A stretch of DNA of 63,018 nucleotides, filler included, from Salisapilia sapeloensis CBS 127946 (taxonomy: Eukaryota > Protista > Oomycota), in the NCBI GenBank assembly GCA_023334545.1. It is 9 parts of 9 records of this genome, joined end to end, with 100 filler letters (N's around TTAATTAATTAA, not from the genome) between each part and the next. Parts side by side here need not be neighbours in the genome. Positions count along the whole stretch, not along the records: positions 51,795 to 53,198 come from JAADVB010001161.1; 8 more parts are not named here. One strand, given 5' to 3'. Made by a program: the position numbers and the translations under genes. Under the pieces are notes generated by a model. That model was not told the origin of the DNA. It did no database searches and was given only the letters and a program-made list of their open reading frames with translations. Below are positions 2,318 to 53,198 of the stretch, piece by piece (position 1 is the stretch's first letter; every line of letters starts with the position of its first letter).

Positions 2318-3317
2318 TGAACTGAGCTACTTTTGTTTTCTTCCGACGATCTCGTTTGCTACATGTATCCGCTCGTACGTTTCTTCATGTCTCTTTGCTC
2401 GTGATGCGATGGTGGTCGAAAGACATCCGACGCATGGATATGGCTACTCCACTCGAGTAGTAGACGCAATGCATCAGCACTGGCGGGGTACTAGAAAGCA
2501 AATTGTACTGGGCTCTTGTGAGCTGTAGCGTGTTCACCATAGCCTTGTCGAAATATAAAAGGAGTAGGATTGTAGCTAGTCTTTGTACTGAATAGTATAC
2601 AAAGGAGTCCGACCGTAAGTAGAGTTTTTTACGCAAATGAGCATCCAAGAGGTGCGAATTGGATGAGATTCGAATGACTATGACCTACGACAATTGCACA
2701 CGCCTTTTACTTTTGCAACATAGTGCGACGTCGTCTACGAATACAAGCAATCTAGGGTACTGCTCAACTCCCATACACGAGTCAAGCTATACGTCATCTA
2801 TCGTGCAGATCGACCTTCGAAAGCACTCGCCTAAGTCGGTGTACAGGTGCATATGTCTTTAGCTACATTCAGAGAAGACATGGGTACTTAAGAGGGATTG
2901 TACCCAGGTTTTCTTCAGCTCTAGAGACGTGTGCACCCAAGACTTCAATCCCAGTCAGGAGGGAGAGGCATGGAATCCAAGTACCATACAATTCTCCCAA
3001 CAAAGTAAATTTTAGTCGTGTTCTTTAGTAACGTCCACATCCATTCCATCAGGTCTTCCCACACCATATGGGTACATGCTGTCTTCGGCAAGCATCCAAG
3101 TAGGCCTCGTCCTTGCCTACCTCTCCTATCGCTACTAGATGCATGACCATAGCTATTAAATAGACAACTATCCTCGATCTCTACCCAAGTTTCCATTGCT
3201 TTCAACCACCTTGCTACGACTACATCTCTTGTACCCATGATGCTTCTACCGCTACATCGCGCCAGATACCTCCTGTCAAGTCTTCTCGCATTTCAAATCA
3301 TAAAACTCAAGCAGGAG

Positions 3318-5411
3318 ATGACATCGATTTCGCACCGCCGAGACATGCTGCTGGAAGGCGCTCGGACGGGAGACTACGACCTGGTGCATGTCATGCTCTC
3401 CCGTGGCACGTCTGCGAGTTCCTCAGACAAACACGGCTTGTCGGCGCTGCACCACGCCGTCCGGTATGGTGACCGGCGCATCGTGAAAGCGCTGCTAAAG
3501 GAACGAGCCAACGTGGATAGCGTAACGAAAGAATCGGGTCAGACGCCACTCTTTTTCGCCGTGGAGAGGAACGACCTAGATATGATTCGACTGCTGATTA
3601 GCTGCCAAGCGAGCGTCCACGTGCAAGACGCGAGCGACAGAACACCGCTCTTGTACGCTGTCGAACTCGGCAGAACGGATGCGGTCGGGTTGCTCATGCG
3701 TCGCGGCGCCACGGCGTGCGTGCACGACCGTCAGAAACGGTCGGCGCTACGTATCGCCGTGGAGCACGGCCATGCAGATGTCGCAAAGTGCTTGATGAGT
3801 GAAAAGCGCATGGTCCATGAGGTCGGTCCGGACGGCAGGACGCCGCTGGACATTGCCATGATGAAGGGAAACCCCAAGACTATCATGCTCCTGGTTCACA
3901 AGGGCGCTGAGGTCAACCGGACGGACGACCAGGGCCGGACGCCGCTCATGTTCGCGACGGAATACAACAACGTGGCCGCCATGCGTGCGCTCCTGGACCA
4001 CGGCGCGAGTGTCGACGCCACCGACAGCACACGCAAGTACACGAGTCTACATGTAGCAGCCGTAAACGGACACTTGGAGGCCACCAAGCTGCTCGTCAGA
4101 CGTGGCGCACGCATCGACATTGAAGATCGACTCGGGCGCACTGCAGCGATGGTAGCCAACGCGTATGGCCACCAGGGACTGGCGAGTATACTAGAGAACG
4201 GCACAAGCTATCAGTTGTTCGAATTGGCCAAGGCAGGAGACGAGCAAGGCGTCAGAGCGTTGCTGGAGGGAGGCGCGGATGTAAACGCCAGCACGAAGGC
4301 ACAAGAGACTTGTCTGCACGTCGCGAGTGCGTCTGGCCATCCGTTAGTGGTGCAGATGCTCATGGAGCACGGCGCGGACGTGGACGCTTTAACGGCGCAG
4401 AACATGACGCCGCTACTGTACGCCGTCGACAACGGCAAGGCAGAGGCGGCGGCGATGCTGTTACATTTAGGAGCGAACGTGGAAGCGAGGAATGGACGTG
4501 GGTGGACGCCACTGATCATGGCGGCGCACAACCGAGACGCCAGGACGGTGCGTGCGCTGCTGGAAGGCGGTGGTGACGTGAACGGCAGCAGCAGCGAACA
4601 TAACGCTGGGTGGACGGCACTGCTGTTTGCCGCGGCCAAGGGCTGCGTGCCGGTGCTGGAAGTGCTGCTGGAGCACGGCGCGGACGCGGAAGTGCACACT
4701 TCGGATGGATGGACTGGCCTTACGTTTGCCGCTAGCAGAGGCTACGCATCAGCGGTAGCGTTTCTGCTATACAAAGGAGTGCAGGTGGACCCGCCGGCAC
4801 GGCAAGGGTGGACACCACTGCTCTTTGCCGTGGAGAGAGGACACAAGGACGTTGTGAGGTTACTACTGGGCTACGGCGCCAATGCGGAGGTAGTCGACAC
4901 GAGCGGCCAGTCAGCGAGTACAATCGCTCGTCGGAATGGGAGGGAGGATATGCTGGTTCTCCTGCAGCAGCCAGTTCCCGAGGATTGCATCGACATCCTC
5001 GGGACGGACGAGCAGCCGAGCTGGAAGATGTTCGACACGGACTCTCAGTCATTTGATGAGATGGACCGAGGGACGGCCGGTACGTCCATGTCGATGCTAG
5101 ATGAAGCGTTTCGGCAGCATGGTATTCGTCCTAGCGACAGCATTCATAGCGACGCCGATAGTCGTGTAGCTTTACGTAGTGGGTACCTGGACGAAAGCCA
5201 GTCGCCTAGATCTGTCCGCACTGCGTCGGCTGCGACAGACTCGGACCACTCCTTGCGTCACGGCTCTAGCATGTCTAGCATGCCAAGTCAGGACGAGGAG
5301 GACGAGTCAAGTCTCAAGGAAGGCTCGATCCGCTGCCGAACGTGCCGTTCGTCGATCGCGCCAGGCATGCGCTTTTGCGGCATGTGTGGAGACCGAGTGA
5401 AGGTCGTGTAG
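3318..5411 (+). CDS. Ankyrin-repeat protein (about 17 repeats) with C-terminal zinc ribbon
   Basis: Repeated TPLxxA...G units; Ser/Asp-rich tail; C-terminal CRTC...FCGMCG. Start chosen at MTSISH (ORF is open from 3237). Confidence 0.9.
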   Translation: MTSISHRRDMLLEGARTGDYDLVHVMLSRGTSASSSDKHGLSALHHAVRYGDRRIVKALLKERANVDSVTKESGQTPLFFAVERNDLDMIRLLISCQASVHVQDASDRTPLLYAVELGRTDAVGLLMRRGATACVHDRQKRSALRIAVEHGHADVAKCLMSEKRMVHEVGPDGRTPLDIAMMKGNPKTIMLLVHKGAEVNRTDDQGRTPLMFATEYNNVAAMRALLDHGASVDATDSTRKYTSLHVAAVNGHLEATKLLVRRGARIDIEDRLGRTAAMVANAYGHQGLASILENGTSYQLFELAKAGDEQGVRALLEGGADVNASTKAQETCLHVASASGHPLVVQMLMEHGADVDALTAQNMTPLLYAVDNGKAEAAAMLLHLGANVEARNGRGWTPLIMAAHNRDARTVRALLEGGGDVNGSSSEHNAGWTALLFAAAKGCVPVLEVLLEHGADAEVHTSDGWTGLTFAASRGYASAVAFLLYKGVQVDPPARQGWTPLLFAVERGHKDVVRLLLGYGANAEVVDTSGQSASTIARRNGREDMLVLLQQPVPEDCIDILGTDEQPSWKMFDTDSQSFDEMDRGTAGTSMSMLDEAFRQHGIRPSDSIHSDADSRVALRSGYLDESQSPRSVRTASAATDSDHSLRHGSSMSSMPSQDEEDESSLKEGSIRCRTCRSSIAPGMRFCGMCGDRVKVV

Positions 5412-51794: not shown

Positions 51795-52843
51795 CCTTCG
51801 CTCTTGAGCTTGTTCCGATCGTACCAGTTGATCAGCTTTAGGCCTAACATTTGATGCATCGTACCTGCTTTCACATGAAAGAATCGTCGCATAAATGCCC
51901 TTCGATTCTCTTGAACTCCGGGGCCATCCTGAATGAGGTCCTGGATGGTGAAGTTGCTGGTGACAAGGACAGTGGTGTTAGTGATCTGGGGTGTCTTGTA
52001 CTTTTGATCGACAGCGAATCCCGCTTCATCGCACAGTGTCTTGACAAAGTTGATGCTAAGCTTATCCAACGCATCGTGGTCGAGATCTTCAAGCATAACA
52101 TGCGTATGCACCTTGGGATTGTACAGATCGAAGAAACGATTGTACAGATTCTTCTTATAGTAGGCTGGATAGATGTACGCGAGGAGCTGCGTCTTACCTT
52201 CACCGGCAAATCCGTGTAGCCAGATATGTGGATGTCCCTTGTTACCAGCGTGTGGCTTTGTTTGATCAAGCATGGCTTTAATTCGCTCTCCATAGATCAA
52301 GTAGTTTCGTGGGAACTTGTGGAAGGCTTCTTGTTCTCGTCCTCCTTCGATGTCGGATTTGATTTCGACAATGATTTCGTCGATTTTTCGCTTTTTCTCT
52401 TCTTCCGAGGCTTTAGTAATTGTGCCTCCTTTGTCTTGTGGAAGATCTCCAGCCTCAAAGATAACTCGTTCGTTGTTGTTGACTTTGCTGAACTCTTTCG
52501 TGTGGTGATCGCGCCATCCGGAGTAAGGGAGATCTCGGTTCCTCGGCACAAGATAATAACCGTTTCCAGCTTTGACACCCCAATTTTTAAGCAGGGCTGA
52601 TTTGCTTGTTCGGTTGTTGAGGATGGCTGCAACGTGGATGTGTCGGACTTCGTAGTCGTCTTGGAATGGCTTGGTTCCGATCTCAACACCTCCGATAAGA
52701 ATGTATCGAAACTTTCCGGCATCGTTTTCTCGCTTGATGGAGGAGACAATGTTGTTGAGGGCCTCGTCGGTTTGGACGTTGAATCGTGCATCCCACTCGC
52801 GGTCTTGTGCTCTGAAGGATACCGTGCGTTGTGCGTTGAACAT
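51795..52843 (-). CDS. CRESS-DNA-virus-like Rep (HUH endonuclease + superfamily 3 helicase), 3'-partial; probable endogenous viral element
   Basis: Motif I-like WDARFN (aa 17-22), HUH motif HIHV (68-71), Walker A GFAGEGKT (211-218), Walker B VMLED, B' VDQKY, motif C VTSN, arginine finger AFMRRF. No stops or frameshifts in 349 codons. Confidence 0.9.
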
Positions 52844-52846
52844 GGC

Positions 52847-52862
52847 AAATTGCCGAATGAAC
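52847..52862 (-). promoter_or_regulatory. INR+FPR core promoter of the Rep gene
   Basis: Minus strand GTTCATTCGGCAATTT (15/16 match), followed by GCC-ATG. Confidence 0.7.
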
Positions 52863-52964
52863 TGACACTGGCAAGAGCTTTTGAATGGTGCATCTCATGC
52901 GTCTAGAAGTGCGATGTGCGTTGAGATATTGCAGGATACTTTTTTGCGATCTTGTTGACACGTT

Positions 52965-53198
52965 TGTGACCCTTCAGACATTACGTACCCATAAGTCATG
53001 CGATCTTTTGACTAAAATTAGTCACTGATTGAACCATATGTGTTACTACGCGATATTTCACAAGGATGTTTCTGAACATGCATTCCGAGTAGGAATGATT
53101 GCCTGAATGATGGTATGAATGTATGTATGATTAGACCTCGGACTAATCTGGTCGGACCAGGTTACACATCTGATCCCCTTTCCTATTGGATCGTTACA
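52965..53198. repeat. Possible LTR or element terminus upstream of Rep
   Basis: Starts TGTGAC and ends CGTTACA exactly at the contig edge; CGTTACA is the reverse complement of the TGTAACG LTR start at 29844. Several short inverted repeats lie inside. Confidence 0.35.

Follow-up and report, generated by a model that had tools for sequence, protein, structure and literature searches.

A Rep gene cut by the edge of a short assembly piece

The stretch of DNA analysed here (63,018 nt, filler included; hereafter the window) is joined from nine parts of the genome assembly of the oomycete Salisapilia sapeloensis CBS 127946 (GCA_023334545.1). The part under study, window positions 51795-53198 (JAADVB010001161.1), is a 1404-nt piece with no N, and it carries a gene for a replication-associated protein (Rep) resembling those of circular Rep-encoding single-stranded (CRESS) DNA viruses. 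The original prediction, made from the sequence alone, had described an intact gene with the full set of Rep motifs and no capsid gene, and had offered a recently integrated or active virus, a capsid-less rolling-circle element or a domesticated gene as possible explanations.

The Rep frame lies on the minus strand, as do all features given below in window coordinates unless stated otherwise, and in the translation of the piece it is open for 349 codons from an ATG at 52843 to 51795. It contains no stop codon; the edge of the piece cuts the gene at its 3' end, and because full-length relatives measure 385-392 aa, about 41 C-terminal residues (~41 codons) are missing. Seven motifs follow one another in order: WDARFN (residues 17-22), HIHV (68-71), GFAGEGKT (211-218), VMLED (249-253), VDQKY (278-282), VTSN (294-297) and AFMRRF (316-321). 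Six were verified letter by letter in the DNA and VDQKY was read from the translation, so that the open frame and the motifs quoted for it in the original prediction were confirmed. A search of 5.8 billion protein clusters returned 1085 Rep homologues (more than 1000 at E ≤ 1e-3), the best 120 of which were listed. The best of these, P0001 (390 aa), is 97% identical to the Rep of the piece (E 1e-231), and the other listed matches are 57-67% identical; similarity on this scale lies well outside what chance would give. A HMMER scan of 1.84 billion cluster representatives gave 328 clusters at E ≤ 1e-3.

Conservation was assessed by column counts. In the motif I-like strand WDARFN (52778-52795), W17, D18, R20 and N22 are each kept in 120-121 of 121 close relatives. 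Motif II, H-I-H at residues 68-70 (52634-52642), provides the putative HUH metal-binding pair: both H68 and H70 are present in 121/121 close relatives, as is E54, and the two histidines are kept in 45 and 41 of 48 distant relatives, respectively. The helicase motifs comprise Walker A (GFAGEGKT, 52190-52213), Walker B (VMLED, 52085-52099), motif C (VTSN, 51953-51964) and the arginine finger region (AFMRRF, 51881-51898), all within a superfamily 3 (SF3) helicase domain; all 121 close relatives retain G211, G214, G216, K217, E252, D253, S296, N297, R319 and R320.

Predicted fold and domain architecture of Rep

We built an AlphaFold2 model with a 27-sequence alignment, and it reached a mean predicted local distance difference test score (pLDDT) of 86.7. 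Residues 13-132 of the model run in the beta-alpha-beta-beta-alpha-beta-alpha-beta order found in HUH domains, and a Foldseek search of the PDB matched the N-terminal domains of porcine circovirus 2 (PCV2) and duck circovirus Rep (5xor, 6wdz, 7kii/7kij) with TMt of 0.77-0.82 and root-mean-square deviations of 2.5-3.4. The same search also matched the PCV2 Rep ATPase domain, full-length vientovirus Rep, and Rep68 and Rep40 of adeno-associated virus (AAV). Against BFVD, the top match was a Rep fragment annotated as 'Grus japonensis parvoviridae sp.' (49% identity, E 7e-28), followed by full-length CRESS-DNA virus Reps. From the secondary structure of the model and the Foldseek matches, a putative HUH-fold domain of endonuclease type was placed at residues ~12-135 (52439-52810). 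It is followed by a predicted helical linker or oligomerisation region at residues ~145-196 (52256-52411), with helices over 147-195 in the model, and by the SF3 helicase domain at residues ~200-335 (51839-52246), which was delimited from column counts and the family profile against the PDB and which appears in the model as a P-loop domain (residues 206-325).

At the level of sequence profiles, the family profile aligned from the linker region onward to residues 112-281 of PCV2 Rep (7lar), and it matched the PCV2 Rep helicase at E 3e-13 and AAV Rep40/68 at E 1e-6. The Pfam families Parvo_NS1 and RNA_helicase matched weakly, under the cut-off for the Rep of the piece and over it for some relatives; for Parvo_NS1 the score was 15.5 bits against a curated cut-off of 20, with the helicase part alone matching. 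A search of Pfam and PHROGs with the single Rep protein likewise returned only sub-threshold helicase matches. A profile of the N-terminal domain compared with PDB sequences found nothing relevant, so that the evidence for the HUH fold is the predicted structure.

The model and the profile matches support a Rep of Cressdnaviricota type in which a predicted HUH-fold domain is fused to an SF3 helicase, as had originally been proposed from the motifs; the circovirus matches, at TM scores of about 0.8, decide the question of whether the N-terminus has an HUH fold in its favour at fold level. The separation from Helitrons and Replitrons drawn in the original prediction also holds, given that the helicase is of the SF3 type and that complete relatives, whether listed or fetched, occur only on contigs of at most 4.4 kb.

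Histidine at the position of the catalytic tyrosine

The motif set described as full names no motif III (YxxK in CRESS Reps), and in that respect the description was incorrect. In the MAFFT alignment the canonical motif III position falls on residues 113-116 (52496-52507) and reads H-H-T-K. The tyrosine column is occupied by histidine in 121/121 close relatives and in 28 of the 48 distant cluster representatives, tyrosine being present in 16 of the 48. The Pfam Viral_Rep matches of the distant relatives P0262, P0266 and P0268 end at this column, and profile-profile alignment with hhalign places Y136..K139 of P0262 on H113..K116 (probability 100%, E 2e-52). In the AlphaFold2 model the HHTK segment stands at the end of helix 107-114.

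As aligned, the Rep of the core family has a histidine in place of the presumed catalytic tyrosine at motif III. A relocated nucleophile at Y107, Y96/Y97 or Y47 was considered and set aside, as none of these residues is invariant in the His-113 group (Y97 in 142/149, Y47 in 139/149, Y96 in 133/149 and Y107 in 128/149). Because the position of the canonical nucleophilic tyrosine is taken by histidine, the mode of nicking by this Rep is in real doubt. The substitution may reflect a cutting chemistry different from that of classical HUH enzymes and tied to the linear genome, and it bears on how a Rep of Cressdnaviricota type came to serve a linear, hairpin-ended genome. We found no mention of this histidine in the literature searched, which did not cover the ICTV proposal itself, and it may already be known.

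A near-identical metagenome contig carries a capsid gene

The whole 1404-nt piece aligns without gaps to a metagenome contig of 4138 nt, L001, at 97.4% identity (L001 1006-2408). L001 contains a leftward open reading frame (ORF) of 213 aa (115-756), an intergenic region of ~600 nt, a Rep of 390 aa, an ORF of 411 aa (2557-3792) that starts 25 nt after the Rep stop and has the same orientation as Rep, and a 3' ORF of 100 aa (3798-4100). The 411-aa ORF is homologous to the same-position ORFs of 22 other loci (tblastn E ~1e-15) and matches a profile of eleven capsid-position proteins at E 5e-34. The profile of this capsid family in turn matches the phospholipase A2 (PLA2) region of parvovirus VP1 (E 9e-17), and Pfam PF08398 was detected in 6 of 12 members; the L001 capsid is without the PLA2 N-terminal segment present in 6 of 12 family capsids. 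Neither the 213-aa nor the 100-aa ORF of L001 shows similarity to the same-position ORFs of other loci.

The absence of a capsid gene, as stated in the original prediction, is thus true of the 1404 nt, where the gene is missing because the contig ends inside Rep, but not of the element: the search for a linked capsid gene that had been proposed found a homologue of the capsid body directly downstream of Rep in L001.

Between the piece and L001, the Rep gene differs by 12.5 synonymous and 14.5 non-synonymous changes (dN/dS 0.31), with no indel or stop. The number of non-synonymous changes is below the neutral expectation (p 0.002), and Rep is under purifying selection.

The differences between the two sequences are unevenly spread. 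A 478-nt block (window 51843-52320) is 100% identical to L001, and all 36 differences (3.9%) fall in the remaining 925 nt of the alignment, a pattern very unlikely had they been evenly distributed (p ~1.5e-5). This mosaic identity points to recombination, collapsed copies or chimeric assembly.

Relatives are short linear genomes

All 120 listed homologues reside on contigs of at most 4367 nt. The 31 JGI metagenome loci, for which 10-kb flanks had been requested, were all whole contigs of at most 4178 nt, and further whole-contig relatives were found in two unrelated bacterial metagenome-assembled genomes (3952 and 3279 nt) and in IMG/VR (one, 3753 nt). Every relative examined has the same gene order: a small leftward ORF precedes Rep, and Rep is followed by a capsid ORF (389-641 aa) and then by a further small ORF. 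The ends of most relatives of at least 3 kb carry inverted repeats (30-186 nt) or palindromes (104-214 nt), and in many of these relatives the terminal self-palindromes amount to hairpins at both ends. The inverted repeats of 30 nt, seen in read-archive contigs, are probably longer repeats shortened by the assembler. The genomes of the relatives are linear and end in inverted repeats or hairpins, an organisation with which the rolling-circle or circular form envisaged in the original prediction does not agree.

Several loci deserve separate mention. On the 4367-nt contig L011, two copies of a 123-aa leftward ORF stand in opposite orientation (515-886 and 1111-1482), a head-to-head duplication of the left end, of the kind that a replicative dimer or assembly across the terminal repeat would give. 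L022, unlike the other relatives, has no terminal inverted repeat and instead shows a direct terminal repeat of 127 nt (1-127 and 3739-3865), which may be an assembler artefact or may reflect a circular or concatemeric form. The P0094 lineage is represented by an identical 3292-nt contig from different read-archive runs (L002-L007) and is indexed in 131 blocks of read-archive assemblies; such identical recurrence is the pattern expected of reagent-borne DNA. In the JGI metagenome contig L048 (1-2899), there is an N-terminal Rep fragment at the contig edge (64% identical, residues 16-155); next to it come an ORF of 441 aa that matches nothing in Pfam and then bacterial-looking genes (RpoZ/Rpb6 family, DUF4340). 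Since the neighbouring genes look bacterial, a eukaryotic endogenous viral element (EVE) was set aside for this locus, which is either a chimeric assembly or an unexplained context.

Endogenous copies in oomycetes

Oomyvirus-like EVEs with Rep and capsid protein have been reported in the genomes of Phytophthora, Aphanomyces and Pythium, and oomyvirus transcripts in Plasmopara and Aphanomyces, while an oomyvirus has yet to be isolated from an oomycete (bioRxiv 10.64898/2026.04.22.720165). Among the homologues found here, P0130 (222 aa; 57% identical over residues 4-195) lies near the end of the 76.7-kb contig BBXB02000151.1 (locus L050) of GCA_001029375.2, the PacBio assembly of Pythium insidiosum Pi-S (PMC10576409). 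The Rep-like region is truncated and spread over several reading frames, the 11 kb in which it lies have a G+C content of only 41%, and a search for capsid similarity at this copy was negative. It is a decayed insertion.

A candidate overprinted ORF and the region upstream of Rep

A candidate overprinted ORF of 198 aa occupies the +1 frame of Rep (52297-52893) and starts at an ATG 50 nt upstream of that of Rep. It covers the N-terminal half of Rep, and Ser/Thr make up 33% and Lys/Arg 15% of its predicted product. In 34 of 39 distinct relatives the +1 frame likewise holds an ATG-started ORF, 132-251 codons long and terminating 415-589 nt into Rep, with products of 18-34% Ser/Thr and ~10-19% Lys/Arg; the +2 frame is never open for long in these genes. 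In the half of Rep that the ORF overlaps, conserved four-fold codons vary less at their third position (1.27 vs 1.73 bits, p 0.001). Synonymous codon shuffling indicated that much of the openness of the +1 frame follows from the Rep protein sequence: the null was clearly exceeded in 9 of 39 genes (0/300), marginally in most others, and not in the piece itself (70/300). A Pfam search with the +1 product gave no match. Because the piece does not exceed the codon-shuffle null, the ORF was set aside as a proven gene and stays a candidate. A conserved, overprinted Ser/Thr-rich ORF of this kind may represent an unrecognised accessory gene.

The remainder of the piece, upstream of Rep (52844-53198), is non-coding and corresponds to part of the ~600-nt intergenic region that separates Rep from the leftward ORF in L001, from which it differs at 9 positions in 354 nt (L001 1006-1359). 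These 355 nt showed no unusual secondary structure compared with shuffled sequences (z 0.15) and no origin-like hairpin. A repeat search of the piece yielded only short, chance-like pairs, and two ORFs that run antisense to Rep on the plus strand (122 and 124 aa) had neither a Pfam match nor other support.

Probable assignment to the Oomyviridae

The family Oomyviridae (ICTV, the international virus taxonomy committee, 2025) belongs to the order Lineavirales, named for its linear genome, within Arfiviricetes and Cressdnaviricota; it holds 3 genera and 38 species, and its likely hosts are stramenopiles (PMC12451638). According to the same source, the group was first described in 2013 as a parvovirus/circovirus 'hybrid', NIH-CQV/PHV (PMC12451638), and the ICTV exemplars include NIH-CQV and several Grus japonensis records (PMC12451638, supplement). 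Two further papers give as the defining combination a PLA2-containing capsid together with a circovirus-like Rep (PMC13426907, PMC4419787). By similarity, the Rep of the piece clusters with over 1000 others whose architecture is that of the Oomyviridae, and its top BFVD match is a Grus japonensis Rep. We regard the piece as a fragment of an Oomyviridae genome, an assignment that is strong although not formally closed.

Origin of the piece

The explanation we favour is that the piece is an incompletely assembled fragment of a small linear single-stranded DNA genome of the Oomyviridae, probably present as non-integrated DNA in the sequenced preparation. Along its full 1404 nt the piece is collinear with the viral contig L001, and it contains no host flank. 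The fragment, the leading third of such a genome, would comprise ~355 nt upstream of Rep and the first 349 of ~390 Rep codons, and the complete genome of the lineage, judged from L001, would measure at least 4.1 kb and carry a small leftward ORF, the ~600-nt intergenic region, Rep, capsid and a small ORF. In the replication mechanism we propose, Rep would bind and process the terminal hairpins through its predicted HUH-fold domain, with the invariant E54, H68 and H70, and would unwind DNA as an SF3 hexamer, as homology suggests; replication would then resemble the rolling-hairpin mode of parvoviruses and not the rolling circle of circoviruses.

Non-integrated DNA could have entered the preparation in two ways, which share the probability of this explanation about equally and only jointly make it likely. 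That the sequenced oomycete carried the oomyvirus unintegrated is, taken singly, somewhat doubtful. That oomyvirus DNA came from a silica column or another consumable and was assembled as a stray contig of low depth is a real possibility, though we would not presume it. PHV/oomyvirus sequences are well known to contaminate silica spin columns and have turned up in blanks and in the membranes of many commercial kits (PMC13141889, PMC4279886, PMC4541070), the spin-column recovery from many commercial kit membranes being dated 2026 (PMC13141889), and a reagent source would fit both the stand-alone relatives in unrelated bacterial metagenome-assembled genomes and the identical recurrence of the P0094 lineage across its 131 read-archive blocks. 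A 1.4-kb fragment of a ~4-kb genome, broken inside a gene, is also what low read depth produces, and it favours low abundance, be it of a contaminant or of a rare episome. Known kit lineages recur widely, however, whereas this lineage is rare: only P0001, on one contig, exceeds 67% Rep identity in the collection of 5.8 billion clusters, and no exact 32-mer of the piece occurs in IMG/VR. With stramenopiles as the predicted hosts, its presence in an oomycete assembly is moreover not a neutral coincidence. Integration into the host genome, as a young and intact insertion in an oomycete chromosome, possibly multi-copy and with the contig broken at repeat boundaries, appears unlikely. The EVEs reported in Phytophthora, Aphanomyces and Pythium and the Rep-like copy within the 76.7-kb P. 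insidiosum contig give it a precedent, and the mosaic identity with L001 is compatible with collapsed paralogous copies. Yet no host sequence flanks the piece, which is collinear throughout with a free-standing viral contig; its ORF is intact and under purifying selection, in contrast to the P. insidiosum copy, which is split over frames, truncated and without detectable capsid; and 97.4% identity to a complete environmental gene set is easier to explain through a circulating virus. The gaps on either side, read in the original prediction as typical of multi-copy sequence, are unusable as a sign of it, the sequence outside the piece being artificial filler.

A capsid-less rolling-circle element or a domesticated host gene, both put forward in the original prediction, would account for an intact ORF with no capsid gene within the piece, but we consider them very improbable: the piece ends inside Rep, and the near-identical 4.1-kb contig has its capsid gene 25 nt beyond the Rep stop. 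No complete Rep homologue, listed or fetched, lies on a contig longer than 4.4 kb, the opposite of what a host gene or a genome-embedded transposon family would show; the termini of the relatives are the inverted repeats of a linear genome and not those of a circle, and the region upstream of Rep has no origin-like hairpin. Several observations weigh against the explanation by a non-integrated oomyvirus genome itself. The link to the Oomyviridae is indirect, drawing on shared architecture, the BFVD match and the literature. Linearity and gene order were taken from relatives, since the piece includes no termini and no capsid gene, and even the closest of them, L001, is without a terminal repeat and probably falls short of its true ends. 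The canonical catalytic tyrosine is absent, which leaves the nicking step of the proposed mechanism unproven. Collapsed copies, no less than recombination, could have produced the mosaic divergence from L001; 1404 nt are compatible with integration, a multi-copy endogenous element would also give a short contig breaking inside the element, and endogenous copies of this Rep family exist in oomycetes.

The distinction matters because Oomyviridae sequences pollute virome studies and the true hosts of the family are only predicted. If the DNA belongs to the organism and not to the extraction kit, the presence in an oomycete assembly of an intact, selected Rep could help to identify the host of the family; an unintegrated oomyvirus in S. 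sapeloensis would be the first direct link of a living host to a non-endogenous oomyvirus, in a family known hitherto only from metagenomes, reagent contamination and decayed insertions. Should the piece prove to be a contaminant, it ought to be taken out of the assembly and added to the blacklists of contaminating sequences.

Comparison with known systems

With the Rep proteins of Circoviridae and Redondoviridae (PCV2 7lar, 5xor, 6wdz; vientovirus 9pqq), the Rep of the piece shares the domain order and, in the predicted model, both folds. It differs from them in an N-terminal domain with no sequence-level match and in the histidine at the tyrosine position of motif III; its motif II reads HxH, compared with HxQ in the distant relatives P0262, P0266 and P0268, which have a Pfam Viral_Rep match. 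Circoviruses possess a circular genome with a nonanucleotide stem-loop, whereas the genomes of the family to which the piece is assigned are linear.

The likeness to Parvoviridae NS1 and to AAV Rep68 and Rep40 lies in the SF3 helicase, with its weak Parvo_NS1 similarity, and, for the family as a whole, in a linear single-stranded DNA genome with terminal hairpins and, in many members, a PLA2-bearing capsid. The Parvo_NS1 match nevertheless remains under the cut-off, the helicase is closer to that of circovirus than to that of AAV Rep (E 3e-13 vs 1e-6), and the N-terminus has no sequence match. The ICTV places the group in Cressdnaviricota on the basis of Rep phylogeny, and not in Parvoviridae (PMC12451638).

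The endogenous copy of P. insidiosum belongs to the same Rep family, with 55-57% identity over the N-terminal half. It is broken and lies inside a 76.7-kb host contig, whereas the Rep of the piece is intact, has no host flank and possesses a free-standing relative of 97% identity.

The closest agreement is with the Oomyviridae (genera Nicoomyvirus, Avoomyvirus and Swoomyvirus). The Rep of ~390 aa, with a predicted HUH-fold domain and an SF3 helicase, corresponds to theirs, and the relatives of the piece agree further in that Rep and capsid point the same way, the capsid often having a PLA2 N-terminus of parvovirus type, in that their genomes are linear, 3.3-4.2 kb long and bear inverted repeats or hairpins at the ends, and in that they recur across unrelated data sets. 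The lineage stands apart in that its Rep is at most 67% identical to all matches listed except one metagenome contig, and in that L001 has a capsid without PLA2, an unusually long intergenic region of ~600 nt and small ORFs without detectable similarity. The Oomyviridae are already named and endogenous oomycete copies already described; to these the piece would add a divergent lineage.

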